This document shows positions 1 to 64,000 of a stretch of 64,000 nt of DNA, in pieces. The notes beneath the pieces are model-generated. The model worked only from the letters and a program-made list of their open reading frames with translations. It had not been told where the DNA came from and ran no database searches. This DNA is from Ranitomeya imitator (taxonomy: Eukaryota). Where the stretch lies: NCBI RefSeq assembly GCF_032444005.1, contig NC_091287.1, positions 562,464,001 to 562,528,000 of the forward strand. Reading direction: 5' to 3'. Made by a program: the position numbers and the translations under genes. Each line of letters opens with the position of its first letter. The stretch's first letter is position 1.

Positions 1-5
1 GTCAG

Positions 6-11617: not shown

Positions 11618-11645
11618 GCTGCAGCCCCTGTTCTGTTACCACAAA

Positions 11646-14756: not shown

Positions 14757-15077
<321 letters not shown>

Positions 15078-17411: not shown

Positions 17412-17461
17412 TTCCGCCGCTCTTAGAGGCGCAGGATCATTATTCTTCTCACTTGTGCTGA

Positions 17462-17863
<402 letters not shown>

Positions 17864-17892
17864 TCGCTCCGTGCTCCGCTCCTCACCACAAA

Positions 17893-17931
17893 GGCTCTTC
17901 TAAGAGCCACCCACACCCTCACTATAAGAGC
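17893..17931 (+). terminator. Histone stem-loop (17893-17908) and HDE-like CTATAAGAGC (17922-17931) of H2B
   Basis: AAA-GGCTCT-TCTA-AGAGCC-ACCCA is canonical; purine core AAGAG at 17926-17930. Confidence 0.95.
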
Positions 17932-18735
17932 CCCCGCACCCTCACTATAAGAGCCCCCTCACTATAAGAGCCGCCCCCGCACCCTCACTATAAGAGCCGC
18001 CCACACCCTCACTATAAGAGCCGCCCGCACCCTCACTATAAGAGCCGCCCACACCCTCACTATAAGAGCCCCCCGCACCCTCACTATAAGAGCCCCCCGC
18101 ACCCTCACTATAAGAGCCCCCCGCACCCTCACTATAAGAGCCGCCCGCACCCTCACTATAAGAGCCGCCCGCACCCTCACTATAAGAGCCCCCCGCACCC
18201 TCACTATAAGAGCCCCCCGAACCCTCACTATAAGAGCCCCCCGCACCCTCACTATAAGAGCCGCCCACACCCTCACTATAAGAGCCGCCCACACCCTCAC
18301 TATAAGCCGCCCACAGCCTCACTATAAGAGCCACCCACACCCTCACTATAAGAGCCACCCGCACACTCACTATAAGAGCCGCCCACACCCTCACTATAAG
18401 AGCCGCCCACACCCTCACTATAAGAGCCGCCCACACCCTCACTATAAGAGCCGCCCACAGCCTCACTATAAGAGCCGCCCACACCCTCACTATAAGAGCC
18501 ACCCACACCCTCACTATAAGAGCCACCCGCACCCTCACTATAAGAGCCCCACGCACCCTCACTATAAGAGCCGCCAACAGCCTCACTATAAGAGCCGCCC
18601 ACACCCTCACTATAAGAGCCGCCCACACCCTCACTATAAGAGCCGCCCACACCCTCACTATAAGAGCCGCCCACACCCTCACTATAAGAGCCACCCACAC
18701 CCTCACTATAAGAGCCGCCAACAGCCTCACTATAA
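17901..18735 (+). repeat. 24-bp H2B 3'-signal satellite, proximal part (about 35 units)
   Basis: Unit TAAGAGCCACCCACACCCTCACTA; the first unit (17901-17924) is the loop/3' arm of the H2B stem-loop plus its downstream sequence. Confidence 0.98.
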
Positions 18736-19113
18736 GGGTACGTTCACATTAGCGTCATGCGACGCTGCGTCGCCGACGCAACGCACGACGCATCGGAAAC
18801 GCACGCAAAAACGCAACTTTTATGACGCAAGCGTCTGACGGATGCGTCGTAAAACGCAGCGTTTTCGGTGCGTTTTTGGTGCGTTTTACCAAAAAACGCA
18901 GCGTTTTACGACGCATGCGTTGGCAAACACTGATTGGATCTTGAGCCACAATTTAGTGTCTAGACACTAGATAACACCACCAATGAATAGAAGAGGGTGG
19001 GTCTAGTGTCTAGACAATCGATAATGTCACCAATGGGTAGATGGGGGTGGGTATTAATGTCATAGTGGTATATATACCCCCGCATACCTTATTTCCAACC
19101 ATACAGCATCAAG

Positions 19114-20497
19114 ATGGATCGTTCCATGGAGAGTATCTACCTCACTTTTGAGCTGGAATTAGCCCTTGCTATAGCTTATGCTTTTGCCTGTCATGAACAG
19201 AGGAGAAGAGACAAACTACGGAGAAGGAGTCGGCGGCGTTTTTGGCTTCACCCTATAGTGGAAGTCCGAGAGAGTCGTGGAGCGTACCATTGTCTTTTTG
19301 GCGAATTAAATGAGAACCAGGACAAATACTTAGAATACACCAGGATGACAAAAGACAGCTTTCGATATCTGCTGCGTCTGGTGGAAGGAACCATTTCCAG
19401 GCAGGACACGCAGCTCCGTAAATCGATTTCCCCTGAGGAGCGTCTGCTGGTGACTCTACGGTACGTAATGGAATGTGAAGGATTTATATGTTCTAGCCAT
19501 TTTTTAAATTAACATGTTTTTGTTTTGCGGGGTGGGGGATTGTAATTAAAAATGGAAAATTCATTCATAACAATTAAATTAATTATATTTATTTATTTTT
19601 CTTCTTGTCAGTTTCCTGGCTACCGGAGAGACATTGAGATCACTGCATTTCCAGTTTCGGATTGGAGTCTCAACACTGTCGGGTATTATTGCAGACACAT
19701 GCCGCGCATTGTGGGACAACCTCCGGGAGGAATTTTTGCCCATCCCTACACAAGAAATATGGCATGCCAACGCCCAAAAATTCCACAAAGTTTGTGATTT
19801 CCCTAACTGTATCGGAGCTGTGGATGGGAAGCACATTAGGATTACCAAGCCGTCAAGAAGTGGATCTCTTTTTTATAATTATAAAAAATACTTTTCCACT
19901 GTGCTGATGGCAATTGCTGGTGCGGACTGCAGGTTTCTCGCTGTGGACATTGGAGCCTTTGGTCGTGCAAATGATTCACGGACATTTAAGGAGTCTGATA
20001 TGGGCCAAAGATTGTACAATAACAATTTTAATTTCCCCCATCCACGACCTCTTCCCAACACTGACGGCCCGGACCTGCCATTTGTTGTTGTTGGTGATGA
20101 GGCTTTTCAAATGAGTGGCAACCTACTGAAACCGTACTCCAGTCGTGGGTTGGACCGTACCAAAACTATATTTAATTATAGACTGTCCAGGGCCAGAAGA
20201 ACTGTGGAGTGCGCCTTTGGCATCCTGGTCTCCAAATGGCGTATATTAGGATCCGCTATAAATTTGAAAATTGAGACAGTGGATGAGGTGGTGAAGGCGT
20301 GTGTGGTTCTCCACAATTTTATTATTGATAAAGAGAGAGTCAACGTGGAACTCGATGAACACATACAAAATCCATTGCCTGATTATCAAGATCATCCTCT
20401 GCGGACAACTGTGGAGATTGCTCATATGAGGGACCAATTTGCTGCATACTTTGTTTCCGATGTTGGCCGTGTTTCATGGCAAGATGAAATGGTGTAA
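19114..20497 (+). CDS. Harbinger DDE transposase (HARBI1-like, DDE_Tnp_4 type); 2 exons 19114-19460 and 19612-20497, 410 aa
   Basis: Donor CG|GTACGT at 19460/19461 and acceptor TTCTTGTCAG| at 19611 join LLVTLR-FLATGETLRSLHFQFRIG in frame. Catalytic motifs GAVDGKH, VGDEAF and RRTVECAFG are present; 1233 nt with no lesions. Confidence 0.92.
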
Positions 20498-21188
20498 TTC
20501 TGTATGTTTTATTATGATGTCATGTAAACACTGTTGTGTTCATCATTTAACCATCCTATGTATGGTGATTCTATGGTTATTGTTTTAATGTTCCCTGGAT
20601 GTATAATGTGTTGTGTTTTCAAATACACTTCTTGAGCCTTTCAGTTTTTAAAAAAAAAAATTTCATACGTTTATACATATTAATAAAATTTAAAAAATCC
20701 AAATTTATTGAAATTTATTGAATTTATTGAAAGTACTAATGTGTGTGCCACAAAATTTGTGTGTTTCATAGTATTGAGGCATAACATAATCGGCTCCCAC
20801 CTTGTCAACCATTATTAATCCTGCAGACTATTTGCATATGGAACAAGGCTTGACAAGGAGGGAGACGATCATGTTTGCTAAACTCTACAGAGTGAACACT
20901 ATTGTACTCAGGATGCTATAATACGTCCAGAGTCAAATAGTGGTGACACTGTCAACATTGCTTCCATCTCACCTGAACAATATTCTTAAGGTACATTTAA
21001 TAAAACTATTATCCACCGATACCGACCAGTGATACGACTGGACCGAGATCGTTGTTTAGTTGTCGCATGGTTGCTGGAGAGCTGTCACACATACAGCTCC
21101 CCAGCAACAAAAAAAGAGCAATCTGTGTAATGCCACACTCACGATATTTACTATTGTTAATGTAATGTTAATTACAAAAAAAACCTTA

Positions 21189-21912
21189 AGGCCCCTTCAC
21201 ATTTAGCGACGCTGCAGCGATACAGACAACGATTCGGATCGCTGCAGCGTCGCTGTTTGGTCGCTGGAGAGCTGTCACACAGACCGCTCTCCAGCGACCA
21301 ACGATGCCGGTAACCAGGGTAAACATCGGGTAACTAAGCGCAGGGCCGCACTTAGTAACCCGATGTTTACCCTGGTTACCATGCTAAAAGTAAAAAAAAA
21401 CAAACACTACATACTTACCTACAGCCGTCTGTCCTCCAGCGCTGCGCTCTGCTTCTCTGCTCTCCTCCTGTACTGTCTGTGAGCTGGAAATCAGAGCGGT
21501 GATGTCACCGCTCTGCTTTCCGGCTCACAGCCAGTACAGGAGGAGTGCAGAGCACAGCGCTGGAGGACAGACAGCGTTAGGTAAGTATGTAGTGTTTGTT
21601 TTTTTTACTTTTAGCATGGTAACCAGGGTAAACATCGGGTTACTAAGCGCGGCCCTGCGCTTAGTTACCCGATGTTTACCCTGGTTACCAGTGAAGACAT
21701 CGCTGGATCGGTGTCACACACGCCGATCCAGCGATGTCAGCAGGAGTCCAGCGACGAAATAAAGTTCTGGACTTTATTCAGCGACCAACGATCTCCCAGC
21801 AGGGGCCTGATCGTTGGTCGCTGTCACACATAACGATTTAATTAACTATATCGTTGCTACGTCACAAATAGCAACGATATCGTTAACAATATCGTTATGT
21901 GTGAAGGTACCT
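21189..21912. mobile_element. Nested non-autonomous Harbinger-type fold-back MITE, 724 bp
   Basis: Imperfect TIRs AGGCCCCTTCACATTTAGCGA (left) and AGGTACCTTCACACATAACGA (right, reverse complement), related to the host TIR GGGTACGTTCACA. TSD TTA (21186-21188 and 21913-21915). Long inverted arms centred near 21503, each with an internal ~70-bp hairpin. Confidence 0.85.
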
Positions 21913-22614
21913 TTACACTACGGTGTGTGAAACGTCCATCGCCGTCAGCTTCCCGTACTGTGCCAGCCCTAAAGCACAGCACAGCGTTTAAGGCAACGGT
22001 GTGCTCAGCTTTACGGGCGGGAATCACAGTGTCAGTGCGGAAAGATGACGGCGAGGGACTTGGTAGACACCTTTTTATATTAGTGGGGTATTGTAAACTT
22101 TTTATTTCAGTGATTAAAACAGTGCACTACCCAATTTTCCCTTGTTTAAAACAAAGACATCGCTGGATTGGTGTGAACTCACCAATCCAACAATGACAGC
22201 TTCTGATAAGTTACCCAAAAAATATTCCAAATCATTTGCTGATAACCAAAAAATCACAGCAGGGGCTCAATCGTTTTACGATTTCAGAAAAGACAAAGTT
22301 AAAACAACTATATCCATACTGAAATCGTTGTGTGATGGTACTTTGTAAACGTGACATATTGAGCAATGCTGTTTGTGTTTGTAACATCTGAGTACAATGA
22401 ACGACAGCCATATAAGAAAATGTTAAAAAAAATAGAGATAATATTGTCACACATTGCACATCTGGTGTTACAAAGACACGATTTGTGTGTACGGCGCAAG
22501 GTGTGATTTGGTGCAAACTTTATTTGAGACAATAAAAACCAAAATTTTTTTTTTAAAAAAAATATAACAAATTTATTTTGTGTTACAAAAAAAATAAAAA
22601 AAGGGAACCCGGTT

Positions 22615-25370
22615 TTAAGGGGTGCCAATGTCCGCAACCAAAGGGGATTCATATCCCCCAGTTTTTTGTGATGAGGAGACCGAGGAGGAGGAAGAGGGGG
22701 AGGAAGCAGCATACTCTATGACACTAGACGGGATGCCGACATCAGTCCAGCCAGTGGATGGTGGTGGCGAGACTGCAACAGAAGCAGGTGAGAGAGGAGG
22801 AGGGACGACCAGTGTCCTTGGCTGGCTACTCCGGCTCTGGGTCGACCCAGGCTGTGTAGATGGTGTACTCCTGGTTGACCCAGGCTGGGTAGTGGGTGTA
22901 CTCCGTGTAGACCCAGCCTGGGTACTTGGTGTGCTCCGGGTCGACCCAGGCTGTGTTCTGGTGGTACTTTGGGGAGCAGCCATAGCCAAGGACGTAGTGC
23001 TTGTGGTCGTCATGGTCTTCTTCTTCTTCTTTTTCCTCCTCTCTCCCTCTGGGTGGGGGTCGGCTTCCCGTCTGTGCCCCCTTGAAGGCCTGTCAGGCTC
23101 GGAACTTTGGGGCTCAGTTCTGTGGTGGCGGTGGCGGCGGCGGTGGCCCTCGGCACGCGGACCTCTGTGGTGGTGCTCTGCAGCAGGAGTCGGAGTCATG
23201 GCAGCCAGCGATGGTACTGCGGGCATATTTGTCGCTGACTGCATGACCCGAGCCTGCTGCAGAGCACTGACATATAAATTGTTGCAGCCCTGCATGAACG
23301 AAATCTGGAGTTCCGGCGTAAGATGTTCCACCATGCCGTTGTGAATGGCACTAAAGAAATGTTTTGCCGGCCTCGAGAGATCCGTTTCGATGTTTTCAAG
23401 ACGCCGTTGGATATTGCACATTTTATCGCACAGCGCCTTGAAACCATTCTGAAATACGGTACTCAGATGTAAAAATTCGGACATGGGCGCCCTGTCCGAG
23501 GCCCGCTGACGCTGTCGGGAAGACCCAAAGGACGGAGCAACAGAGGCCTCGGCCAGAGGAACATCTGATGGACCGGCTGCCGGTTCGCCAGATTGTGTTG
23601 TTGCAGACCTGCTCTCGCTGTGGGATGGCCGCGACAGTTCAGATGGCGCTTCACAAAGGACCGCTCTTGAGGGTCGTCTTGAGGATTGGACAGTCTCGCG
23701 GGTGCTGCTGTGTGTTCTGTGAAAACATAAGGAAACCATTAGTATAAAAAATATCACATTTCACATGCGTCAGAACATTTTACCGCCAGGTATCCATTAC
23801 CGCCATTAATATTACACTATTTTTAATATTGACACTGCATATGCACCATCAATATTAAACAAACGGTATTTATTTAATTCTAAAGAGTCACCCATGTTTT
23901 TAGTTTGCAACGCCAGACAATTATGCTTAGGTTGGAACTGCCATCACGTCACGGTCATGTGAACGAGACGTCATCACAGGTCCTGCGAGCTGAGCAACCA
24001 TGGGAACCTAACCAGCTTTGCAGTGGAATGTATGCCGTATCTATTATATTTAACTTTATTATGTATAAAAAATCGTAGATACACCTGGCAAGTGTGAGAA
24101 GATAAGAAATGAATAAAAAATTCAAGGTCAACGAGTGGTGAAAAGTTTAAAAAAAAAAATGTTTTAACTTCAATCAAAAGCAGAGGATGAAACATCTGCA
24201 CAATACAATAAAAAAACTATCTACGCGTTTCAGGTCTGATGTTCCCTGTCACCTGAAACACGTAGATAGAGTCTATTGTATTGTGCTGATGTTTGATCCT
24301 CTGCTTATGATTCAAGAGGAGAAAAGTATGTATTTTTGCACAACTCTGTGAACTAGCCTTTTTTTACTTCATTTATATACTTGGTACTTGGCAAAATAAA
24401 TGGCTGGGCAATAAGCAACGTGACTGGAATGTAGTATGTGAATATGCATGTTGTGAAAACTAGGTGTGTGAATAGGTACTATACTTACTCTCTGCTTTCA
24501 AGGACCGGTCGCAAGAACTGCAGTATACGGTTATGCTTGTACACCGAGGTCCTTGAAGCGCCAGCACCACTACGAGCCTGTCCCTCCTTTTTCAGGCCCC
24601 TCTTGAAACGGTCCTTCATGGAGCGCCATCTGGTCCTCAATTGTTTAACTGTGTATTAAAAAAAAAAAAAAAAAAAGGTTTTAGATAATATATCGAAAAA
24701 GATTACGCAACCGTGTGCAATCCCAATCAAAGACATCACAGACGGTTGTGTAATCCTGGCATGATGGGTCACAGCACTATTTTTTAAATACTTACGGAAA
24801 CTGGCTTTGGCCTTGGCGTTAGCGCTGTCGAAGCCATCCCACAGCGTTTGTGCCACCTCCAACCACAGACGCCGCAATATGCCCTGGTCCGCGTGCTGGG
24901 GGTCACGGCTGTCCCACAACGGGCCCCGTGCTTCTATTGATGCCACCATTAGGTCAATGTTAAGTGGCTCATCCAGGGCCCGTTGTGAAACCTAGAAAAG
25001 AATGGAAAATATGAAGGTTTGAAAGAGAAAAAAATTGTCCCTATCTCCTCCACCGACACCTACTACACACAACACCACACCCTACCACCACCCCCCCAAT
25101 ACCCGCAAAAAAAAAAATAAAAAAAAAATAAAGGTTTGAAATAAATACTTACGCTCCGTCCTGCAACCACAGCTTGGCCCCGTGGTCCCTGCTGCTGCTC
25201 CCTCTCTTCCTCCTGGTTCTCCTCCTCACTTGAAGAAGCCTGCAAAATAGTTTAACAAAAAGTTGAGTGACCCATCTACAAATGACAGCGAAAATATAGC
25301 AAGCAATAGTAGATCATGTACTCACCGGACTCCTCAGCGGTGGGGTGCCGGAATCACTGCCGCTGGCCAT
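22615..25370 (-). CDS. Harbinger accessory MADF (Myb/SANT-like) DNA-binding protein; 5 exons 25370-25326, 25239-25153, 24991-24796, 24648-24489, 23716-22615; 529 aa
   Basis: All junctions are GT-AG and in phase (45+87+196+160+1102 = 1590 nt). MADF signature LMVASIEARGPLWDSRDPQH...LWLEVAQTL...LRTRWRSMKDRFKR...YKHNRILQFLRP. Possible BESS-like segment HFFSAIHNGMVEHLTPELQISF. Low-complexity S/T/P tail. Confidence 0.88.
24172..24312. repeat. ~140-bp palindromic hairpin in intron 4 of the MADF gene
   Basis: Arms aatcaaaagcagaggatgaaacatctgcacaatacaata...ctatctacgcgtttcaggt and acctgaaacacgtagatag...tattgtattgtgctgatgtttgatcctctgcttatgatt around a 15-nt loop. Confidence 0.85.
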
Positions 25371-26710
25371 GACTAATTAAAGCAGTTCTGAAATTAACAA
25401 AAAAATAACATTGACTATGCTCCTATGCACTATCATGCAATAAATAATATTAAAAAAAAAAGGCATTTAAACCACAAATAACATTGCACTCCAACTGAAC
25501 TAACGATGAGCAAACTACACTGCCACATTGATTAGATTAAAGAAACAATGGCAGAGACAACCCAATGCCAGAGTACAAAAGGCTAAAGATAAGAAAATTA
25601 ACAAGTACACAATGTAGTAATCCCAAAAGATTTTTTTAAAAAAGAAAAATTACAGTATGCACGGATCAACACAAAAAACACAATATGTGGTTGTAATAAA
25701 AAATATTTCAACACGAAAAAAAATAAGGGCAGAAACATAAATACTTTACAATGAAACCAACAGTGCCGGAGAAAATAGAAGGGGATACAACGCCATACAT
25801 CGCAACCAGAAACATACAACTATGTATTTACACAACCACAGTGCTGAAAATAATACACAAATTGCAATAAAAATGTAATAAAAGGCCTCAAAATCATTCT
25901 ATACTACCATACTTTACAAAACAACCGACAGGGCCAGAGACAATGAAACGCCATCATATAACGGAAGAATAAAACAGCACAACTGAATACAAAAACAACA
26001 CCAAACCAAAAAATGGAAACTCAAAATCAATCTTGGAAAGAACACTAATCAAGGCCGCAGACAATGAAACGCCATCCTATACACAATGCCGTCCATCAAA
26101 ACCAAACCAAAAAGACCACAATATCTTTAGCCACAGTGCAGAATATAAAACACTACTTGCAAAAAAAATTGTAAAAACATGTAGAAAATGCACATAATCA
26201 TTCTATACTTACATCTCTGGACAGCGGATGAGAAGACAGTTGCTCTGATGTGTCTGGTCTGATGTTGCCTGTTGTGTAGCCGGCAGCAGAAGTGACAAAC
26301 AATCCTACATTTTCTTTATATATGGGGGATGTTTTTCTCACTGTTTGCACTGTCTAGACACTGTCTAGACACTTTTTTGTTTCATTTTATGTTACGACGC
26401 ATGCGTCGCACAACGCATGCACGACGCACACCCGCGACGCAAGTGCGTCGTCAATACGTTTCAATGGGAAATTGTAACGCATTGACGACGCACGAGCGAC
26501 GCGCGCGTTTTTTTGGCGCTCCGAAAATGCAACATGTAGCGTCTCCGACGCCACCCAGGTGCGGTGTTACGACGCATGCGTCGTGCGTTTTACTGAAAAC
26601 GCACGACAACGCAACGCATGCGTCCCCAATGATAAAGATAGGGGCGCATGACGCATGCGTTGTCGTGCGTCGGCGACGCAGCGTCGCATGACGCTAATGT
26701 GAACGTACCC

Positions 26711-29700
26711 TAAGAGCCACCCGCACCCTCACTATAAGAGCCACCCACACCGTCACTATAAGAGCCACCCACACCCTCACTATAAGAGCCACCCAAACCC
26801 TCACTATAAGAGCCACCCGCACCATCACTATAAGAGCCACCCACAGCCTCACTATAAGAGCCACCCGCACCCTCACTATAAGAGCCGCCCACACCCTCAC
26901 TATAAGAGCCGCCCACAGCCTCACTATAAGAGCCACCCACACCCTCACTATAAGAGCCACCCACACCCTCACTATAAGAGCCACCCACACCCTCACTATA
27001 AGAGCCGCCCACAGCCTCACTATAAGAGCCGCCCACACCCTCACTATAAGAGCCACCCGCACCCTCACTATAAGAGCCCCCCGCACCCTCACTATAAGAG
27101 CCGCCCACAGCCTCACTATAAGAGCCCCCCACACCCTCACTATAAGAGCCCCCCAAACCCTCACTATAAGAGCCACCCGCACCCTCACTATAAGCCACCC
27201 ACAGCCTCACTATAAGAGCCACCCGCACCCTCACTATAAGAGCCGCCCGCACCCTCACTATAAGAGCCACCCACACCCTCACTATAAGCCGCCCACAGCC
27301 TCACTATAAGAGCCACCCACACCCTCACTATAAGAGCCACCCGCACACTCACTATAAGAGCCGCCCACACCCTCACTATAAGAGCCGCCCACACCCTCAC
27401 TATAAGAGCCGCCCACACCCTCACTATAAGAGCCGCCCACACCCTCACTATAAGCCGCCCACAGCCTCACTATAAGAGCCACCTACACCCTCACTATAAG
27501 AGCCACCCGCACACTCACTATAAGAGCCGCCCACACCCTCACTATAAGAGCCGCCCACACCCTCACTATAAGAGCCGCCCACACCCTCACTATAAGAGCC
27601 GCCCACAGCCTCACTATAAGAGCCGCCCACACCCTCACTATAAGAGCCACCCACACCCTCACTATAAGAGCCACCCGCACCCTCACTATAAGAGCCCCAC
27701 GCACCCTCACTATAAGAGCCGCCAACAGCCTCACTATAAGAGCCACCCGCACCCTCACTAAAAGAGCCACCCACACCGTCACTATAAGAGCCACCCACAC
27801 CCTCACTATAAGAGCCACCCAAACCCTCACTATAAGAGCCACCCGCACCATCACTATAAGAGCCACCCACAGCCTCACTATAAGAGCCACCCGCACCCTC
27901 ACTATAAGAGCCGCCCACACCCTCACTATAAGAGCCGCCCACAGCCTCACTATAAGAGCCACCCACACCCTCACTATAAGAGCCACCCACACCCTCACTA
28001 TAAGAGCCACCCACACCCTCACTATAAGAGCCGCCCACAGCCTCACTATAAGAGCCGCCCACACCCTCACTATAAGAGCCACCCGCACCCTCACTATAAG
28101 AGCCCCCCGCACCCTCACTATAAGAGCCGCCCACAGCCTCACTATAAGAGCCACCCACACCGTCACTATAAGAGCCACCCACACCGTCACTATAAGAGCC
28201 CCCCACAACCTCACTATAAGAGCCGCCCACAGCCTCACTATAAGAGCCACCCACACCGTCACTATAAGAGCCACCCACACCCTCACTATAAGAGCCGCCC
28301 ACACCCTCACTATAAGAGCCGCCCGCACCCTCACTATAAGAGCCCCCCGCACCCTCACTATAAGAGCCGCCCACAGCCTCACTATAAGAGCCACCCACAC
28401 CGTCACTATAAGAGCCACCCACACCGTCACTATAAGAGCCACCCGCACCCTCACTATAAGAGCCGCCCACACCCTCACTATAAGGGCCGCCCACAGCCTC
28501 ACTATAAGAGCCGCCCACACCCTCACTATAAGAGCCACCCACACCCTCACTATAAGAGCCACCCACACCCTCACTATAAGAGCCGCCCACAGCCTCACTA
28601 TAAGAGCCACCCGCACCCTCACTATAAGAGCCGCCCGCACCCTCACTATAAGAGCCGCCCACACCCTCACTATAAGAGCCGCCCACACCCTCACTATAAG
28701 AGCCGCCCACACCCTCACTATAAGCCGCCCACAGCCTCACTATAAGAGCCACCCACACCCTCACTATAAGAGCCACCCGCACACTCACTATAAGAGCCGC
28801 CCACACCCTCACTATAAGAGCCGCCCACACCCTCACTATAAGAGCCGCCCACACCCTCACTATAAGAGCCGCCCACAGCCTCACTATAAGAGCCGCCCAC
28901 ACCCTCACTATAAGAGCCACCCACACCCTCACTATAAGAGCCACCCGCACCCTCACTATAAGAGCCCCACACACCCTCACTATAAGAGCCGCCAACAGCC
29001 TCACTATAAGAGCCACCCGCACCCTCACTATAAGAGCCACCCACACCGTCACTATAAGAGCCACCCACACCCTCACTATAAGAGCCACCCAAACCCTCAC
29101 TATAAGAGCCACCCGCACCATCACTATAAGAGCCACCCACAGCCTCACTATAAGAGCCACCCGCACCCTCACTATAAGAGCCGCCCACACCCTCACTATA
29201 AGAGCCGCCCACAGCCTCACTATAAGAGCCACCCACACCCTCACTATAAGAGCCACCCACACCCTCACTATAAGAGCCACCCACACCCTCACTATAAGAG
29301 CCGCCCACAGCCTCACTATAAGAGCCGCCCACACCCTCACTATAAGAGCCACCCGCACCCTCACTATAAGAGCCCCCCGCACCCTCACTATAAGAGCCGC
29401 CCACAGCCTCACTATAAGAGCCCCCCACACCCTCACTATAAGAGCCCCCCAAACCCTCACTATAAGAGCCACCCGCACCCTCACTATAAGCCACCCACAG
29501 CCTCACTATAAGAGCCACCCGCACCCTCACTATAAGAGCCGCCCGCACCCTCACTATAAGAGCCACCCACACCCTCACTATAAGCCGCCCACAGCCTCAC
29601 TATAAGAGCCACCCACACCCTCACTATAAGAGCCACCCGCACACTCACTATAAGAGCCGCCCACACCCTCACTATAAGAGCCGCCCACACCCTCACTATA

Positions 29701-38700: not shown

Positions 38701-41700
38701 ACAGCCTCACTATAAGAGCCACCCACACCGTCAATATAAGAGCCGCCCGCACCCTCACTATAAGAGCCCCCCGCACCCTCACTATAAGAGCCCCCCGCAC
38801 CCTCACTATAAGAGCCACCCACACCCTCACTATAAGAGCCACCCGCACCCTCACTATAAGAGCCCCACGCACCCTCACTATAAGAGCCGCCAACAGCCTC
38901 ACTATAAGAGCCACCCGCACCCTCACTATAAGAGCCACCCACACCGTCACTATAAGAGCCACCCACACCCTCACTATAAGAGCCACCCAAACCCTCACTA
39001 TAAGAGCCACCCGCACCATCACTATAAGAGCCACCCACAGCCTCACTATAAGAGCCACCCGCACCCTCACTATAAGAGCCGCCCACACCCTCACTATAAG
39101 AGCCGCCCACAGCCTCACTATAAGAGCCACCCACACCCTCACTATAAGAGCCACCCACACCCTCACTATAAGAGCCACCCACACCCTCACTATAAGAGCC
39201 GCCCACAGCCTCACTATAAGAGCCGCCCACACCCTCACTATAAGAGCCACCCGCACCCTCACTATAAGAGCCCCCCGCACCCTCACTATAAGAGCCGCCC
39301 ACAGCCTCACTATAAGAGCCCCCCACACCCTCACTATAAGAGCCCCCCAAACCCTCACTATAAGAGCCACCCGCACCCTCACTATAAGCCACCCACAGCC
39401 TCACTATAAGAGCCACCCGCACCCTCACTATAAGAGCCGCCCGCACCCTCACTATAAGAGCCACCCACACCCTCACTATAAGCCGCCCACAGCCTCACTA
39501 TAAGAGCCACCCACACCCTCACTATAAGAGCCACCCGCACACTCACTATAAGAGCCGCCCACACCCTCACTATAAGAGCCGCCCACACCCTCACTATAAG
39601 AGCCGCCCACACCCTCACTATAAGAGCCGCCCACACCCTCACTATAAGCCGCCCACAGCCTCACTATAAGAGCCACCCACACCCTCACTATAAGAGCCAC
39701 CCGCACACTCACTATAAGAGCCGCCCACACCCTCACTATAAGAGCCGCCCACACCCTCACTATAAGAGCCGCCCACACCCTCATTATAAGAGCCGCCCAC
39801 AGCCTCACTATAAGAGCCGCCCACACCCTCACTATAAGAGCCACCCACACCCTCACTATAAGAGCCACCCGCACCCTCACTATAAGAGCCCCACGCACCC
39901 TCACTATAAGAGCCGCCAACAGCCTCACTATAAGAGCCACCCGCACCCTCACTATAAGAGCCACCCACACCGTCACTATAAGAGCCACCCACACCCTCAC
40001 TATAAGAGCCACCCAAACCCTCACTATAAGAGCCACCCGCACCATCACTATAAGAGCCACCCACAGCCTCACTATAAGAGCCACCCGCACCCTCACTATA
40101 AGAGCCGCCCACACCCTCACTATAAGAGCCGCCCACAGCCTCACTATAAGAGCCACCCACACCCTCACTATAAGAGCCACCCACACCCTCACTATAAGAG
40201 CCACCCACACCCTCACTATAAGAGCCGCCCACAGCCTCACTATAAGAGCCGCCCACACCCTCACTATAAGAGCCACCCGCACCCTCACTATAAGAGCCCC
40301 CCGCACCCTCACTATAAGAGCCGCCCACAGCCTCACTATAAGAGCCACCCACACCGTCACTATAAGAGCCACCCACACCGTCACTATAAGAGCCCCCCAC
40401 AACCTCACTATAAGAGCCGCCCACAGCCTCACTATAAGAGCCACCCACACCGTCACTATAAGAGCCACCCACACCCTCACTATAAGAGCCGCCCACACCC
40501 TCACTATAAGAGCCGCCCGCACCCTCACTATAAGAGCCCCCCGCACCCTCACTATAAGAGCCGCCCACAGCCTCACTATAAGAGCCACCCACACCGTCAC
40601 TATAAGAGCCACCCACACCGTCACTATAAGAGCCACCCGCACCCTCACTATAAGAGCCGCCCACACCCTCACTATAAGGGCCGCCCACAGCCTCACTATA
40701 AGAGCCGCCCACACCCTCACTATAAGAGCCACCCACACCCTCACTATAAGAGCCGCCCACAGCCTCACTATAAGAGCCACCCGCACCCTCACTATAAGAG
40801 CCCCCCGCACCCTCACTATAAGAGCCGCCAACAGCCTCACTATAAGAGCCACCCACACCGTCACTATAAGAGCCCCCAAACCCTCACTATAAGAGCCACC
40901 CGCACCCTCACTATAAGAGCCCCCCGCACCCTAACTATAAGAGCCGCCCACAGCCTCACTATAAGAGCCACCCACACCGTCACTATAAGAGCCACCCACA
41001 CCCTCACTATAATAGCCCCCCAAACCCTCACTATAAGAGCCACCCGCACCCTCACTATAAGAGCCGCCCACAGCCTCACTATAAGAGCCACCCACACCGT
41101 CACTATAAGAGCCCCCCACACCCTCACTATAAGAGCCGCCCGCACCCTCACTATAAGAGCCGCCCGCACCCTCACTATAAGAGCCACCCGCACCCTCACT
41201 ATAAGAGCCGCCCGAACCCTCACTATAAGAGCCCCCCACACCCTCACTATAAGAGCCCCCGAACCCTCACTATAAGAGCCGCCCACAGCCTCAAAATAAG
41301 AGCCACCCACACCGTCACTATAAGAGCCCCCCAAACCCTCACTATAAGAGCCACCCGCACCCTCACTATAAGCCACACACAGCCTCACTATAAGAGCCAC
41401 CCGCACCCTCACTATAAGAGCCGCCCGCACCCTCACTATAAGAGCCACCCACACCCTCACTATAAGCCGCCCACAGCCTCACTATAAGAGCCACCCACAC
41501 CCTCACTATAAGAGCCACCCGCACACTCACTATAAGAGCCCCCCGCACCCTCATAATAAGATCCGCCCGCACCGTCACTATAAGAGCCGCCCACACCCTC
41601 ACTATAAGAGCCGCCCACACCCTCACTATAAGAGCCGCCCACAGCCTCACTATAAGAGCCGCCCACACCCTCACTATAAGAGCCACCCACACCCTCACTA

Positions 41701-53700: not shown

Positions 53701-56700
53701 CACTATAAGAGCCACCCACACCGTCACTATAAGAGCCACCCACACCCTCACTATAAGAGCCACCCAAACCCTCACTATAAGAGCCACCCGCACCATCACT
53801 ATAAGAGCCACCCACAGCCTCACTATAAGAGCCACCCGCACCCTCACTATAAGAGCCACCCACACCCTCACTATAAGAGCCACCCACACCCTCACTATAA
53901 GAGCCGCCCACACCCTCACTATAAGAGCCGCCCACAGCCTCACTATAAGAGCCACCCACACCCTCACTATAAGAGCCACCCACACCCTCACTATAAGAGC
54001 CACCCACAACCTCACTATAAGAGCCGCCCACAGCCTCACTATAAGAGCCACCCACACCCTCACTATAAGAGCCACACGCACCCTCACTATAAGAGCCCCC
54101 CGCACCCTCACTATAAGAGCCGCCCACAGCCTCACTATAAGAGCCACCCACACCGTCACTATAAGAGCCACCCACACCATCACTATAAGAGCCCCCCACA
54201 ACCTCACTATAAGAGCCGCCCACAGCCTCACTATAAGAGCCACCCACACCGTCACTATAAGAGCCACCCACACCCTCACTATAAGAGCCCCCCAAACCCT
54301 CACTATAAGAGCCACCCGCACCCTCACTATAAGAGCCACCCACAGCCTCACTATAAGAGCCACCCGCACCCTCACTATAAGAGCCGCCCACACCCTCACT
54401 ATAAGAGCCGCCCACAGCCTCACTATAAGAGCCGCCCACACCCTCACTATAAGAGCCACCCACACCCTCACTATAAGAGCCGCCCGCACCCTCACTATAA
54501 GAGCCCCCCACACCCTCACTATAAGAGCCCCCCACACCCTCACTATAAGAGCCGCCCGCACCCTCACTATAAGAGCCGCCCGCACCCTCACTATAAGAGC
54601 CGCCCGAACCCTCACTATAAGAGCCCCCCACACCCTCACTATAAGAGCCCCCGAACCCTCACTATAAGAGCCGCCCACAGCCTCAAAATAAGAGCCACCC
54701 ACACCGTCACTATAAGAGCCCCCCAAACCCTCACTATAAGAGCCACCCGCACCCTCACTATAAGCCACCCACAGCCTCACTATAAGAGCCACCCGCACCC
54801 TCACTATAAGAGCCGCCCGCACCCTCACTATAAGAGCCACCCACACCCTCACTATAAGCCGCCCACAGCCTCACTATAAGAGCCACCCACACCCTCACTA
54901 TAAGAGCCACCCGCACACTCACTATAAGAGCCGCCCACACCCTCACTATAAGCGCCGCCCACACCCTCACTATAAGAGCCGCCCACACCCTCACTATAAG
55001 AGCCGCCCACAGCCTCACTATAAGAGCCGCCCACACCCTCACTATAAGAGCCACCCACACCCTCACTATAAGAGCCACCCACACCCTCACTATAAGAGCC
55101 GCCCACAGCCTCACTATAAGAGCCACCCGCACCCTCACTATAAGAGCCCCACGCACCCTCACTATAAGAGCCGCCAACAGCCTCACTATAAGAGCCACCC
55201 GCACCCTCACTATAAGAGCCACCCACACCGTCACTATAAGAGCCACCCACACCCTCACTATAAGAGCCACCCAAACCCTCACTATAAGAGCCACCCGCAC
55301 CATCACTATAAGAGCCACCCACAGCCTCACTATAAGAGCCACCCGCACCCTCACTATAAGAGCCGCCCACACCCTCACTATAAGAGCCGCCCACAGCCTC
55401 ACTATAAGAGCCACCCACACCCTCACTATAAGAGCCACCCACACCCTCACTATAAGAGCCACCCACACCCTCACTATAAGAGCCGCCCACAGCCTCACTA
55501 TAAGAGCCACCCACACCCTCACTATAAGAGCCCCCCGCACCCTCACTATAAGAGCCGCCCGCACCCTCACTATAAGAGCCCCCCGCACCCTCACTATAAG
55601 AGCCCCCCGCACCCTCACTATAAGAGCCCCCCGCACCCTCACTATAAGAGCCCCCCACACCCTCACTATAAGAGCCCCCCGCACCCTCACTATAAGAGCC
55701 GCCCGCACCCTCACTATAAGAGCCGCCCGCACCCTCACTATAAGAGCCGCCCGAACCCTCACTATAAGAGCCCCCCACACCCTCACTATAAGAGCCCCCC
55801 ACACCCTCACTATAAGAGCCACCCGCACCCTCACTATAAGCCACCCACAGCCTCACTATAAGAGCCACCCGCACCCTCACTATAAGAGCCGCCCGCACCC
55901 TCACTATAAGAGCCACCCACACCCTCACTATAAGCCACCCACAGCCTCACTATAAGAGCCACCCACACCCTCACTATAAGAGCCACCCGCACACTCACTA
56001 TAAGAGCCGCCCACACCCTCACTATAAGAGCCGCCCACACCCTCACTATAAGAGCCGCCCACACCCTCACTATAAGAGCCGCCCACACCCTCACTATAAG
56101 CCGCCCACAGCCTCACTATAAGAGCCACCCACACCCTCACTATAAGAGCCACCCGCACACTCACTATAAGAGCCGCCCACACCCTCACTATAAGAGCCGC
56201 CCACACCCTCACTATAAGAGCCGCCCACACCCTCACTATAAGAGCCGCCCACAGCCTCACTATAAGAGCCGCCCACACCCTCACTATAAGAGCCACCCAC
56301 ACCCTCACTATAAGAGCCACCCGCACCCTCACTATAAGAGCCCCACGCACCCTCACTATAAGAGCCGCCAACAGCCTCACTATAAGAGCCACCCGCACCC
56401 TCACTATAAGAGCCACCCACACCGTCACTATAAGAGCCACCCACACCCTCACTATAAGAGCCACCCAAACCCTCACTATAAGAGCCACCCGCACCATCAC
56501 TATAAGAGCCACCCACAGCCTCACTATAAGAGCCACCCGCACCCTCACTATAAGAGCCGCCCACACCCTCACTATAAGAGCCGCCCACAGCCTCACTATA
56601 AGAGCCACCCACACCCTCACTATAAGAGCCACCCACACCCTCACTATAAGAGCCACCCACACCCTCACTATAAGAGCCGCCCACAGCCTCACTATAAGAG

Positions 56701-59700
56701 CCGCCCACACCCTCACTATAAGAGCCACCCGCACCCTCACTATAAGAGCCCCCCGCACCCTCACTATAAGAGCCGCCCACAGCCTCACTATAAGAGCCAC
56801 CCACACCGTCACTATAAGAGCCACCCACACCGTCACTATAAGAGCCCCCCACAACCTCACTATAAGAGCCGCCCACAGCCTCACTATAAGAGCCACCCAC
56901 ACCGTCACTATAAGAGCTACCCACACCCTCACTATAAGAGCCGCCCACACCCTCACTATAAGAGCCGCCCGCACCCTCACTATAAGAGCCCCCCGCACCC
57001 TCACTATAAGAGCCGCCCACAGCCTCACTATAAGAGCCACCCACACCGTCACTATAAGAGCCACCCACACCGTCACTATAAGAGCCACCCGCACCCTCAC
57101 TATAAGAGCCGCCCACACCCTCACTATAAGGGCCGCCCACAGCCTCACTATAAGAGCCGCCCACACCCTCACTAAAAGAGCCACCCACACCCTCACTATA
57201 AGAGCCACCCACACCCTCACTATAAGAGCCACCCACACCCTCACTATAAGAGCCACCCACACCCTCACTATAAGAGCCGCCCACAGCCTCACTATAAGAG
57301 CCGCCCACACCCTCACTATAAGAGCCGCCCGCACCCTCACTATAAGAGCCCCCCGCACCCTCACTATAAGAGCCGCCCACAGCCTCACTATAAGAGCCAC
57401 CCACACCGTCACTATAAGAGCCACCCACACCGTCACTATAAGAGCCCCCCACAACCTCACTATAAGAGCCGCCCACAGCCTCACTATAAGAGCCACCCAC
57501 ACCGTCACTATAAGAGCCACCCACACCCTCACTATAAGAGCCGCCCACACCCTCACTATAAGAGCCGCCCGCACCCTCACTATAAGAGCCCCCCGCACCC
57601 TCACTATAAGAGCCGCCCACAGCCTCACTATAAAAGCCACCCACACCGTCACTATAAGAGCCACCCACACCGTCACTATAAGAGCCACCCGCACCCTCAC
57701 TATAAGAGCCGCCCACACCCTCACTATAAGGGCCGCCCACAGCCTCACTATAAGAGCCGCCCACACCCTCACTATAAGAGCCGCCCACACCCTCACTATA
57801 AGAGCCACCCACACCCTCACTATAAGAGCCACCCACACCCTCACTATGAGAGCCGCCCACAGCCTCACTATAAGAGCCACCCGCACCCTCACTATAAGAG
57901 CCCCCCGCACCCTCACTATAAGAGCCGCCAACAGCCTCACTATAAGAGCCACCCACACCGTCACTATAAGAGCCCCCAAACCCTCACTATAAGAGCCACC
58001 CGCACCCTCACTATAAGAGCCCCCCGCACCCTAACTATAAGAGCCGCCCACAGCCTCACTATAAGAGCCACCCACACCGTCACTATAAGAGCCACCCACA
58101 CCCTCACTATAATAGCCCCCCAAACCCTCACTATAAGAGCCACCCGCACCCTCACTATAAGAGCCGCCCACAGCCTCACTATAAGAGCCACCCACACCGT
58201 CACTATAAGAGCCCCCCACACCCTCACTATAAGAGCCGCCCGCACCCTCACTATAAGAGCCGCCCGCACCCTCACTATAAGAGCCACCCGCACCCTCACT
58301 ATAAGAGCCGCCCGAACCCTCACTATAAGAGCCCCCCACACCCTCACTATAAGAGCCCCCGAACCCTCACTATAAGAGCCGCCCACAGCCTCAAAATAAG
58401 AGCCACCCACACCGTCACTATAAGAGCCGCCCACAGCCTCACTATAAGAGCCACCCACACCCTCACTATAAGAGCCACCCGCACACTCACTATAAGAGCC
58501 CCCCGCACCCTCATAATAAGATCCGCCCGCACCGTCACTATAAGAGCCGCCCACACCCTCACTATAAGAGCCGCCCACACCCTCACTATAAGAGCCGCCC
58601 ACAGCCTCACTATAAGAGCCGCCCACACCCTCACTATAAGAGCCACCCACACCCTCACTATAAGAGCCACCCACACCCTCACTATAAGAGCCGCCCACAG
58701 CCTCACTATAAGAGCCACCCGCACCCTCACTATAAGAGCCCCACGCACCCTCACTATAAGAGCCGCCAACAGCCTCACTATAAGAGCCACCCACACCGTC
58801 ACTATAAGAGCCGCCCACAGCCTCACTATAAGAGCCACTCGCACCCTCACTATAAGAGCCACCCACACCGTCACTATAAGAGCCACCCACACCCTCACTA
58901 TAAGAGCCACCCAAACCCTCACTATAAGAGCCACCCGCACCATCACTATAAGAGCCACCCACAGCCTCACTATAAGAGCCACCCGCACCCTCACTATAAG
59001 AGCCACCCACACCCTCACTATAAGAGCCACCCACACCCTCACTATAAGAGCCGCCCACACCCTCACTATAAGAGCCGCCCACAGCCTCACTATAAGAGCC
59101 ACCCACACCCTCACTATAAGAGCCACCCGCACCCTCACTATAAGAGCCCCCCGCACCCTCACTATAAGAGCCGCCCACAGCCTCACTATAAGAGCCACCC
59201 ACACCGTCACTATAAGAGCCACCCACACCGTCACTATAAGAGCCCCCCACAACCTCACTATAAGAGCCGCCCACAGCCTCACTATAAGAGCCACCCACAC
59301 CGTCACTATAAGAGCCACCCACACCCTCACTATAAGAGCCGCCCACACCCTCACTATAAGAGCCGCCCGCACCCTCACTATAAGAGCCCCCGCACCCTCA
59401 CTATAAGAGCCGCCCACAGCCTCACTATAAGAGCCACCCACACCGTCACTATAAGAGCCACCCACACCGTCACTATAAGAGCCACCCGCACCCTCACTAT
59501 AAGAGCCGCCCACACCCTCACTATAAGAGCCGCCCACACCCTCACTATAAGAGCCGCCCACAGCCTCACTATAAGAGCCGCCCACACCCTCACTATTAGA
59601 GCCACCCACACCCTCACTATAAGAGCCACCCACACCCTCACTATAAGAGCCGCCCACAGCCTCACTATAAGAGCCACCCGCACCCTCACTATAAGAGCCC

Positions 59701-62700
59701 CCCGCACCCTCACTATAAGAGCCGCCAACAGCCTCACTATAAGAGCCACCCACACCGTCAATATAAGAGCCACCCACACCCTCACTATAAGAGCCCCCCA
59801 AACCCTCACTATAAGAGCCACCCGCACCCTCACTATAAGAGCCCCCCGCACCCTAACTATAAGAGCCGCCCACAGCCTCACTATAAGAGCCACCCACACC
59901 GTCACTATAAGAGCCACCCACACCCTCACTATAATAGCCCCCCAAACCCTCACTATAAGAGCCACCCGCACCCTCACTATAAGAGCCGCCCACAGCCTCA
60001 CTATAAGAGCCACCCACACTGTCACTATAAGAGCCCCCCACACCCTCACTATAAGAGCCCCCCACACCCTCACTATAAGAGCCGCCCGCACCCTCACTAT
60101 AAGAGCCACCCGCACCCTCACTATAAGAGCCGCCCGAACCCTCACTATAAGAGCCCCCCACACCCTCACTATAAGAGCCCCCGAACCCTCACTATAAGAG
60201 CCGCCCACAGCCTCAAAATAAGAGCCACCCACACCGTCACTATAAGAGCCCCCCAAACCCTCACTATAAGAGCCACCCGCACCCTCACTATAAGCAACCC
60301 ACAGCCTCACTATAAGAGCCACCCGCACCCTCACTATAAGAGCCGCCCGCACCCTCACTATAAGAGCCACCCACACCCTCACTATAAGCCGCCCACAGCC
60401 TCACTATAAGAGCCACCCACACCCTCACTATAAGAGCCACCCGCACACTCACTATAAGAGCCCCCCGCACCCTCATAATAAGATCCGCCCGCACCGTCAC
60501 TATAAGAGCCGCCCACACCCTCACTATAAGAGCCGCCCACACCCTCACTATAAGAGCCGCCCACAGCCTCACTATAAGAGCCGCCCACACCCTCACTATA
60601 AGAGCCACCCACACCCTCACTATAAGAGCCACCCACACCCTCACTATAAGAGCCGCCCACAGCCTCACTATAAGAGCCACCCGCACCCTCACTATAAGAG
60701 CCACCCACACCCTCACTATAAGAGCCACCCACACCCTCACTATAAGAGCCGCCCACACCCTCACTATAAGAGCCGCCCACAGCCTCACTATAAGAGCCAC
60801 CCACACCCTCACTATAAGAGCCACCCACACCCTCACTATAAGAGCCACCCACACCCTCACTATAAGAGCCGCCCACAGCCTCACTATAAGAGCCACCCAC
60901 ACCCTCACTATAAGAGCCACACGCACCCTCACTATAAGAGCCCCCCGCACCCTCACTATAAGAGCCGCCCACAGCCTCACTATAAGAGCCACCCACACCG
61001 TCACTATAAGAGCCACCCACACCATCACTATAAGAGCCCCCCACAACCTCACTATAAGAGCCGCCCACAGCCTCACTATAAGAGCCACCCACACCGTCAC
61101 TATAAGAGCCACCCACACCCTCACTTTAATAGCCCCCCAAACCCTCACTATAAGAGCCACCCGCACCCTCACTATAAGAGCCGCCCACAGCCTCACTATA
61201 AGAGCCACCCACACTGTCACTATAAGAGCCCCCCACACCCTCACTATAAGAGCCCCCCACACCCTCACTATAAGAGCCGCCCGCACCCTCACTATAAGAG
61301 CCACCCGCACCCTCACTATAAGAGCCGCCCGAACCCTCACTATAAGAGCCCCCCACACCCTCACTATAAGAGCCCCCGAACCCTCACTATAAGAGCCGCC
61401 CACAGCCTCAAAATAAGAGCCACCCACACCGTCACTATAAGAGCCCCCCAAACCCTCACTATAAGAGCCACCCGCACCCTCACTATAAGCAACCCACAGC
61501 CTCACTATAAGAGCCACCCGCACCCTCACTATAAGAGCCGCCCGCACCCTCACTATAAGAGCCACCCACACCCTCACTATAAGCCGCCCACAGCCTCACT
61601 ATAAGAGCCACCCACACCCTCACTATAAGAGCCACCCGCACACTCACTATAAGAGCCCCCCGCACCCTCATAATAAGATCCGCCCGCACCGTCACTATAA
61701 GAGCCGCCCACACCCTCACTATAAGAGCCGCCCACACCCTCACTATAAGAGCCGCCCACAGCCTCACTATAAGAGCCGCCCACACCCTCACTATAAGAGC
61801 CACCCACACCCTCACTATAAGAGCCACCCACACCCTCACTATAAGAGCCGCCCACAGCCTCACTATAAGAGCCACCCGCACCCTCACTATAAGAGCCACC
61901 CACACCCTCACTATAAGAGCCACCCACACCCTCACTATAAGAGCCGCCCACACCCTCACTATAAGAGCCGCCCACAGCCTCACTATAAGAGCCACCCACA
62001 CCCTCACTATAAGAGCCACCCACACCCTCACTATAAGAGCCACCCACACCCTCACTATAAGAGCCGCCCACAGCCTCACTATAAGAGCCACCCACACCCT
62101 CACTATAAGAGCCACACGCACCCTCACTATAAGAGCCCCCCGCACCCTCACTATAAGAGCCGCCCACAGCCTCACTATAAGAGCCACCCACACCGTCACT
62201 ATAAGAGCCACCCACACCATCACTATAAGAGCCCCCCACAACCTCACTATAAGAGCCGCCCACAGCCTCACTATAAGAGCCACCCACACCGTCACTATAA
62301 GAGCCACCCACACCCTCACTATAAGAGCCCCCCAAACCCTCACTATAAGAGCCACCCGCACCCTCACTATAAGAGCCACCCACAGCCTCACTATAAGAGC
62401 CACCCGCACCCTCACTATAAGAGCCGCCCACACCCTCACTATAAGAGCCGCCCACAGCCTCACTATAAGAGCCGCCCACACCCTCACTATAAGAGCCACC
62501 CACACCCTCACTATAAGAGCCGCCCGCACCCTCACTATAAGAGCCCCCCACACCCTCACTATAAGAGCCCCCCACACCCTCACTATAAGAGCCGCCCGCA
62601 CCATCACTATAAGAGCCGCCCGCACCCTCACTATAAGAGCCGCCCGAACCCTCACTATAAGAGCCCCCCACACCCTCACTATAAGAGCCCCCGAACCCTC

Positions 62701-64000
62701 ACTATAAGAGCCGCCCACAGCCTCAAAATAAGAGCCACCCACACCGTCACTATAAGAGCCCCCCAAACCCTCACTATAAGAGCCACCCGCACCCTCACTA
62801 TAAGCCACCCACAGCCTCACTATAAGAGCCACCCGCACCCTCACTATAAGAGCCGCCCGCACCCTCACTATAAGAGCCACCCACACCCTCACTATTAGCC
62901 GCCCACAGCCTCACTATAAGAGCCACCCACACCCTCACTATAAGAGCCACCCGCACACTCACTATAAGAGCCGCCCACACCCTCACTATAAGAGCCGCCC
63001 ACACCCTCACTATAAGAGCCGCCCACACCCTCACTATAAGAGCCGCCCACAGCCTCACTATAAGAGCCGCCCACACCCTCACTATAAGAGCCACCCACAC
63101 CCTCACTATAAGAGCCACCCACACCCTCACTATAAGAGCCGCCCACAGCCTCACTATAAGAGCCACCCGCACCCTCACTATAAGAGCCCCACGCACCCTC
63201 ACTATAAGAGCCGCCAACAGCCTCACTATAAGAGCCACCCGCACCCTCACTATAAGAGCCACCCACACCGTCACTATAAGAGCCACCCACACCCTCACTA
63301 TAAGAGCCACCCAAACCCTCACTATAAGAGCCACCCGCACCATCACTATAAGAGCCACCCACAGCCTCACTATAAGAGCCACCCGCACCCTCACTATAAG
63401 AGCCGCCCACACCCTCACTATAAGAGCCGCCCACAGCCTCACTATAAGAGCCACCCACACCCTCACTATAAGAGCCACCCACACCCTCACTATAAGAGCC
63501 ACCCACACCCTCACTATAAGAGCCGTCCACAGCCTCACTATAAGAGCCACCCACACCCTCACTATAAGAGCCCCCCGCACCCTCACTATAAGAGCCGCCC
63601 GCACCCTCACTATAAGAGCCCCCCGCACCCTCACTATAAGAGCCCCCCGCACCCTCACTATAAGAGCCCCCCGCACCCTCACTATAAGAGCCCCCCACAC
63701 CCTCACTATAAGAGCCCCCCGCACCCTCACTATAAGAGCCGCCCGCACCCTCACTATAAGAGCCGCCCGAACCCTCACTATAAGAGCCCCCCACACCCTC
63801 ACTATAAGAGCCCCCCACACCCTCACTATAAGAGCCACCCGCACCCTCACTATAAGCCACCCACAGCCTCACTATAAGAGCCACCCGCACCCTCACTATA
63901 AGAGCCGCCCGCACCCTCACTATAAGAGCCACCCACACCCTCACTATAAGAGCCACCCGCACACTCACTATAAGAGCCGCCCACACCCTCACTATAAGAG
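26711..64000 (+). repeat. 24-bp H2B 3'-signal satellite, distal part (more than 37 kb, about 1550 units, runs off the window) with higher-order repeats
   Basis: Continuous TAAGAGCC(A/G/C)CC(C/A)(A/G)CA..CTCACTA units with 22-bp (AG-deleted) and 23-bp variants. Rare markers recur at fixed offsets, e.g. TAAAAGAG at 27759, 30055 and 32351 (2296 bp). Confidence 0.99.

Follow-up and report, generated by a model that had tools for sequence, protein, structure and literature searches.

Histone genes and the 3' end of H2B

We analyzed a window of 64,000 nt from Ranitomeya imitator (NC_091287.1; all positions are those of the window, that is, of the whole stretch of DNA analyzed), which is occupied by a frog histone cluster, and we describe a 24-bp tandem repeat that starts at the 3' end of its H2B gene. 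From the list of open reading frames (ORFs) we retrieved two copies of an H1 gene (143-790 and 10970-11617), an H4 gene (14766-15077) and the H2B gene (17483-17892, plus strand, coding region and short 3' untranslated region (UTR)); no H2A or H3 gene was found in the 64-kb window. A putative promoter region and 5' UTR of H2B were delimited at 17290-17482 (plus strand) by reading the sequence, using motifs that we take to be CCAAT-like boxes, an octamer-like motif (ATCTGCAT) and TATAAA. The first 33 codons are readable, the body of the gene is masked as N at 17584-17863, and the tail of the 3' UTR occupies 17864-17892.

Directly downstream lies the stem-loop of the H2B mRNA 3' end, GGCTCT-TCTA-AGAGCC (17893-17908, plus strand), which reads GGCTCTTCTAAGAGCC and is followed by the ACCCA cleavage tail (17909-17913, plus strand), the cleavage position being that of the mouse substrate ...AGAGCCACCCA//C... 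(PMC5435866). With both flanks the hairpin reads ACAAAGGCTCTTCTAAGAGCCACCCA (17888-17913), a 6-bp stem with a 4-nt loop, located downstream of the H2B ORF and on the same strand. The Histone3 profile of Rfam (RF00032) matched it at 17888-17932 on the plus strand with a score of 33.9 bits (E-value 3.3e-7), 0.1 bit below the curated cut-off of 34 bits. The 3' signal of the H2B gene itself is a histone 3' UTR stem-loop. Using a pattern search, we identified a total of five histone-type hairpins in the window, at 819 and 11646 (both H1), 15106 (H4), 16602 (an orphan hairpin, upstream of which we found no histone ORF) and 17893 (H2B), all on the plus strand and with RF00032 scores of 34.2, 34.2, 27.1, 24.8 and 33.9 bits respectively.

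Extent and structure of the 24-bp array

The array begins within the H2B hairpin, with zero foreign bases in between. Unit 1, TAAGAGCCACCCACACCCTCACTA (17901-17924, plus strand), comprises the last two bases of the loop, the 3' arm, the ACCCA tail (positions 9-13 of the unit) and a pyrimidine-rich spacer, and in a unit census its sequence is the most frequent one of the array (230 copies). The next TAAGAG starts at 17925 (AAGAG at 17926). The hairpin, unit 1 and this TAAGAG all read as described in an earlier note made from the sequence alone.

Tandem Repeats Finder reported the repeat in two parts, a gene-proximal one (17901-18736, 35.2 copies, 92% matches) and a main one (26711-64000, 1559.2 copies, 91% matches, score 59005). 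We accordingly list about 35 units at 17901-18735 and about 1,559 units at 26711-64000, both on the plus strand and the latter open at the end of the window. The interval between them (18736-26710) is a Harbinger-type transposon. The stretch 17893-64000, which the earlier note gave as a satellite of at least 38 kb, is thus not satellite throughout, a point that the note does not spell out. Without the transposon the array measures 38,122 bp, or 1,588 unit equivalents in a single orientation, in agreement with the roughly 1590 units in register with the gene that the same note had counted; 38 kb is a minimum for the assembly, as the array extends past the end of the window. From 28 kb to the end of the window, GC skew holds at about -0.56, and because it stays flat across the array we conclude that all units have one orientation, on the same strand as the gene.

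Among the first 17 units, odd lengths occur only in units 2-4 (23, 17 and 26 bp; 17925-17990, plus strand), which adjoin the gene. Array edges usually escape homogenisation, and these odd-length units fit such an edge. The first TAAGAGCC within 17925-17990 sits at the position of the histone downstream element (HDE) of the gene, with its AGAGC located 24 nt past the AGAGC of the arm. In the 1,349 clean units, 13 of the 24 positions are invariant or deviate in at most three units, five further positions vary in less than 3%, and variation is concentrated at positions 9 (A/G/C), 13 (A/G), 16 and 18.

The array comprises about 70 unit types (69-71). Base-by-base autocorrelation of the array revealed no higher-order period because units of 22 and 23 bp shift the register, and we used an analysis of unit labels instead. 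By this analysis, "words" of 10 units that come back at irregular lags (94, 70, 82, 49, 314... units) cover 63% of positions, and one stretch of 100 units recurs exactly, 94 units further on. Such a patchwork of duplicated multi-unit blocks is what unequal exchange would typically produce; it also makes the exact length and internal order dependent on the assembler. Long, head-to-tail, in one orientation, with homogenised variants and a block structure, the array is satellite DNA by its organization.

Some further properties of the array were recorded on the way. Positions 9 and 13, where variation is greatest, alternate between G and A in a CpG context (CCGCCC/CCACCC and CCCGCA/CCCACA), the observed/expected ratio of CpG is 0.59, and methylation-driven decay could shape the variants. 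The array holds CCACACCCT, presumably a KLF-type CACCC box, 555 times. On the complementary strand, runs of GGG-TGT-GGG-TGG might form G-quadruplexes.

Correspondence between the unit and the processing signal

The loop of the H2B hairpin is TCTA, and the repeat reads TAAGAGCC. A 13-nt match, TAAGAGCCACCCA, ties the repeat in perfect register to this gene-specific variant of the hairpin. Across the 38,122 bp of the array we counted 0 occurrences of GGCTCT (the 5' arm) versus 1,503 of AGAGCC; the missing 5' arm is predicted by a duplication located downstream of the loop.

The period is equal to the offset between the arm and the HDE. We measured the distance from the AGAGC of the arm to the next (A/T)GAGC as 22 nt for H1, 22 nt for H4, 23 nt for the orphan hairpin and 24 nt for H2B, and the same offset is 24 nt in the mouse H2a-614 substrate ...AGAGCCACCCA//CUGAAUCAGAUAAAGAGCUGU (PMC5435866). 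AAGAGC lies 12 nt past ACCCA in each unit, which is the geometry of the mouse H2a substrate, and 1,475 units carry CTATAAGAGC, rebuilt at the unit boundaries. The H4 and orphan hairpins have a common spacer pattern, CCCACAYCYTC...TAAG, and by this common architecture the whole unit looks like a histone 3' flank.

A consensus downstream element would be of the AAAGAGCTGT type, and the candidate sequence for pairing with the U7 small nuclear RNA is CTATAAGAGCC. The mouse anti-U7 oligonucleotide AAGAGCUGUAACACU starts with AAGAGC (PMC5435866), and the complementarity of the unit to this documented sequence, which is from mouse and not from frog, ends after these six bases. A fuller match to U7, AAGAGCTG, has 0 occurrences in the window. 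No further histone hairpin was found past 17908, either by pattern match to the end of the window or with RF00032 on 17933-18400 (no match at E-value ≤ 1). The units, having no 5' arm, form no hairpin and are incomplete processing signals; as read from the sequence, the only complete signal would be the copy at the gene, with unit 2 apparently supplying its downstream element. We conclude that the unit reaches from the 3' arm to where the U7 site begins; its derivation from the H2B 3' signal is well supported.

Other histone hairpins of the window

Both H1 genes have an array of their own. The first H1 stem-loop (819-834; RF00032, 34.2 bits) leads in register into a 36-bp satellite (827-4263, 98 copies by Tandem Repeats Finder; together 819-4263, plus strand), and the second H1 gene has an identical stem-loop (11646-11661) and the same 36-bp satellite (11654-13380, 49 copies; together 11646-13380, plus strand). 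The H1 loop is TTTC, and the array reads TCAGAGCC/TCAGTGCC...GCAGAGCTGTATGA, the 36-bp unit containing the 3' arm, ACCA and GCAGAGCTGT. The last of these is also an 8-nt match to the U7-complementary AGAGCUGU.

The H4 stem-loop is followed by an unexpanded downstream element (…AGAGCCGCCCACATCTTCTAAGTGAGCGGCTG; 15106-15146, plus strand; RF00032, 27.1 bits; offset 22). The orphan hairpin is of H2B type (16602-16617) and has a second TAAGAGCC 23 nt on (16602-16640, plus strand; RF00032, 24.8 bits, E-value 7.7e-4), which makes it the only two-copy relative in the window. CCAAT-like boxes (16130-16165) and a donor-like GGTGAGT site (about 16326) are located some 300-500 bp upstream of the orphan hairpin.

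A transposon inserted into the array

The 7,975-bp interruption of the array (18736-26710, plus strand) was identified by its target site duplication, its terminal inverted repeats and Pfam matches as a PIF/Harbinger-type DNA transposon. A TAA target duplication flanks the element (18733-18735 and 26711-26713); the terminal inverted repeats start GGGTACGTTCACATTAGCG and are 96% complementary over 51 nt; and the transposase ORF (19634-20497) matches DDE_Tnp_4 (6.9e-29) and Plant_tran (1.6e-12). Autonomous Harbinger elements are expected to encode a second, Myb-like ORF, and Pfam recognized none in the candidate second ORFs. Excising the transposon together with one TAA in silico restores ...CTCACTATAAGAGCC..., an exact perfect unit; because its removal rebuilds a perfect unit, we conclude that there was one original array, later interrupted.

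The transposon also contains a nest of near-perfect palindromes (21309-21689, arms of 91 nt, 99% complementary) that may be a secondary insertion, and a proline/serine-rich ORF of 380 aa on the minus strand (22615-23757) with no Pfam match.

Distribution of the repeat in sequencing runs and other species

To survey the repeat beyond the assembly, we sampled 31-mers from a kilobase of pure repeat (40001-41000), matched them against sequencing runs, and aligned contigs to the window, with organisms coded by letter. Many runs of organism A, the source species, contain the 31-mers, and these runs come from several studies; the fraction of sampled 31-mers found elsewhere was 0.43 in organism B, 0.23 in H, 0.20 in E and 0.14 in I. 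Contigs aligned to the repeat also came from organisms C, E and D (one contig for D), so that the repeat is found in at least five to six other species. Organisms C and D, which were missing from the 31-mer survey, were considered as repeat-free relatives and rejected since their contigs carry the repeat; no repeat-free outgroup was found among the organisms examined, and a metagenome scan for the unit and its anchor gave no match. The occurrence of the repeat in many individuals and in related species is that of a satellite family.

A 79-nt contig from species B covers 17889-17955, from the 5' arm of the hairpin through the irregular units, with 3 differences and 1 gap. Because this contig spans the junction between hairpin and repeat, the junction predates the split from species B and is not an assembly chimera. 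The idea of a local and recent duplication did not survive these data, given that the repeat occurs in several related species and the junction in species B. We therefore regard the array as an expanded representative of a repeat of variable copy number that is attached to the 3' ends of H2B genes, and not as a one-off local accident. Judging from these alignments, the family appears to be abundant and old, and its first duplication would predate the split from at least one relative with the same junction. In the source species, the summed word depth is 0.3-2 million on consensus units versus 487-2,402 on the hairpin flank; these depths are sums over contigs and not copy numbers.

Origin of the array

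Taken together, these observations make it probable that the 24-bp repeat is a satellite family derived from an H2B-type histone gene, namely from its 3' processing region. Such a derivation had been proposed in the earlier note and is borne out by the gene-specific loop, by the parallel array at H1 and by the equality between the period and the arm-to-HDE offset.

The segment that was amplified would comprise the 3' arm of the stem-loop (TA-AGAGCC), the ACCCA tail and the pyrimidine-rich spacer, up to the U7-binding element (…CTATAAGAGC…). With AGAGC at both ends of this interval, a misaligned exchange or a replication slip could duplicate exactly 24 bp, and each new unit boundary would recreate a CTATAAGAGC resembling the HDE. 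The array may then have grown to at least 38 kb by unequal exchange, first of one unit at a time and subsequently of blocks comprising tens of units, the Harbinger transposon presumably inserting after this expansion. AGAGC misalignment followed by unequal exchange would account at once for a period of 24 bp, for the register and for the missing 5' arm. The misalignment between arm and HDE as the seeding step is likely but unproven. The note had placed this seed in a shared TAAGAGC, which fits the period and the register of the array; the AAGAGCTG that it predicts is absent from the window, the orphan hairpin reads AAGAGCCG in its place, and the H1 array has a period of 36. Beyond this step, we infer slippage and unequal exchange as the mechanism, the polarity and date of the events, and their neutrality.

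Several observations weigh against this derivation or narrow it. No ancestral single copy was seen in the window, which ends before the array does. At H1, the array repeats every 36 bp and the arm-to-HDE offset is 22; since the two differ, slippage between arm and HDE is not a general rule and other breakpoints also occur. In the source species, the depth of repeat words exceeds that of the hairpin flank by a factor of 100-4000, and one contig joins the repeat to 26 bases that are absent from the window. Other borders of the repeat could be the far end of the array, other transposon insertions or other arrays, and arrays unlinked to histone genes may be among them. Contig support for the junction begins only at 17882-17889, with a depth of 0 upstream of 17882, contigs reaching the H2B coding region having been excluded. 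Finally, the length and internal order of the array are those of the assembly, the array exceeding the typical length of accurate long reads.

Neutral expansion is our default. Alternatively, the arrays could be kept by selection, read-through RNA with hundreds of U7-complementary sites serving as a fail-safe zone of cleavage and termination, or as a concentrator of the U7 small nuclear ribonucleoprotein (snRNP) at the histone locus body (known in amphibian oocytes as the "sphere"). We regard this as unlikely, if conceivable. It draws on the 1,475 units with CTATAAGAGC, whose AAGAGC is shared with the first six bases of anti-U7 AAGAGCUGUAACACU (PMC5435866), on the location of the array on the sense strand directly downstream of H2B, a gene that requires U7 snRNP for its cleavage, on the fact that two different histone genes of the cluster (H2B and H1) each have an array, and on the persistence of family and junction across species. 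Oocyte spheres at histone loci also contain U7 snRNP, and lampbrush read-through into satellite is known (PMC12046345). The runs that we guessed to be RNA contain 4-18% of the sampled repeat words, but run types were guessed and contigs are directionless. Moreover, SLBP cannot bind to units that have no 5' arm, complementarity to U7 past AAGAGC is poor in the documented mouse region, and H4 has no array in the same cluster. In its strongest form, histone genes of this frog lineage would have turned their own U7-binding region into arrays of kilobases to megabases, whose read-through RNA would act as a platform capturing U7 snRNP, enforcing termination or nucleating or feeding the oocyte histone locus body; the odds of this, too, seem to us low on the sequence features available.

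It is quite unlikely, in our view, that the family began at another hairpin-bearing gene, such as the orphan at 16602 or another H2B paralogue, and reached this H2B copy by gene conversion or by duplication of the gene with its array, with no seeding at this locus. In favour of such a route, the orphan shares the loop variant and has two copies, the junction with its irregular units is common to species B, the word depth of these irregular units lies far enough over that of the flank to suggest that the junction exists in many copies, and histone clusters are duplicated in the window with 93-95% identity. Such an origin would refine the derivation from H2B rather than replace it, as the source would still be a histone 3' signal, and the window holds no direct evidence on the site of the first duplication.

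That an unrelated, pre-existing satellite was joined to H2B by a rearrangement, its resemblance being coincidental or due to secondary conversion, or that the size of the array is an assembly artefact, is very improbable. The repeat is indeed highly abundant, with at least one further flank, the array exceeds accurate long reads, and exact duplicates of 100-unit blocks can be misplaced by assemblers, but the 13-nt in-register match TAAGAGCCACCCA together with a second gene carrying its own variant is not credible as chance, repeat words turn up across a large number of independent samples and in several species, the junction is present in species B, and an artefact could alter the length of the array, not its existence.

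Relation to known systems

The H2B array belongs with gene-derived satellites, or with minisatellites seeded by a short direct repeat. It resembles the histone 3' signal recognized by SLBP and U7 snRNP in that unit 1 is part of a bona fide signal and in that the units hold AGAGCC, usually an (A/G/C)CCCA tail, and an AAGAGC core located 24 nt from the previous arm. It differs from this signal in that the units have no 5' arm, no hairpin and no SLBP site, and none of them has the full AAGAGCTG. Arm and HDE are both AGAGC-like owing to the similarity between the 5' arm of the stem and the 5' end of U7.

Like the minisatellites (variable-number tandem repeats, which arise by slippage between short direct repeats), the array has a short unit, a variable copy number, a patchwork of unequal exchange and divergent edge units; unlike them, it has its flanking direct repeat built into a functional signal and is of satellite scale. 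The PcP190 satellite family of frogs derives from 5S rDNA, and in both cases a piece of a multicopy gene became the monomer of a satellite family common to related species. Here, unlike in PcP190, the monomer is a 24-bp cis-acting RNA-processing element and not a gene body, and the array is attached in register to its parent gene.

The histone clusters of the newt Notophthalmus offer a third parallel, as an amphibian histone gene is found there beside tens of kilobases of satellite on the transcribed strand. The unit of the newt satellite is a few hundred bp long, and to our knowledge it has not been reported as derived from a processing signal; we compared the two by description, not by sequence. 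Read-through into satellite in amphibian oocytes is documented (PMC12046345; PMC2114352). A keyword search found no published satellite derived from a histone processing signal, and the unit sequence, on either strand, occurred in no searchable paper, most subscription journals lying outside this coverage.

Satellite origins are rarely traceable to a specific functional element; in the H2B array, the sequence reveals the parent element as well as the junction and the period. Within one cluster, H1 with its 36-bp array is a further, independent case, H4 serves as a control in which nothing has expanded, and the orphan hairpin shows the two-copy state. By their similarity, the 3' arm and the U7 site form a built-in direct repeat that may make histone 3' ends prone to expansion, which is testable across genomes. 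The arrays are also a natural construct, with more than 1,000 near-HDE sites placed behind a histone gene, and as such bear on termination, U7 snRNP recruitment and the assembly of the oocyte histone locus body. If neutral, they are a clean example of an essential cis-element seeding the satellite of a species group; if they were a platform for U7, they would be a satellite with a defined function at the RNA level that arose from the signal it amplified.

Other features of the window

We noted that the segment at 1-5523 is duplicated as 10828-14640 with 93-95% identity, each copy holding H1, a 36-bp array and a spacer. The arrays of the two copies differ in length (3.4 and 1.7 kb), divergence is complete beyond the segment, and only the second copy of the cluster runs on into H4, the orphan hairpin and H2B. 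In the first copy, a GA-rich tract of 390 bp directly abuts a 2.7-kb array whose unit is 21 bp long (CTGCTCTATATACTGTACACT, 128 copies), the two together occupying 6907-9987. This region has no counterpart in the second copy, and we found no relation between it and histone signals. The region upstream of H2B (17000-17250) was considered as a degenerate copy of the 21-bp satellite (7297-9987) and discarded, no match of at least 15/21 being found. ORFs at 5860-6645 had no match in Pfam.

The exact H1 protein is also on record in GCA_032444005.1 (on a record of 577.7 Mb), where an H2A gene is located about 8 kb upstream of one H1 copy; this H2A-H1 arrangement differs from that of the window.

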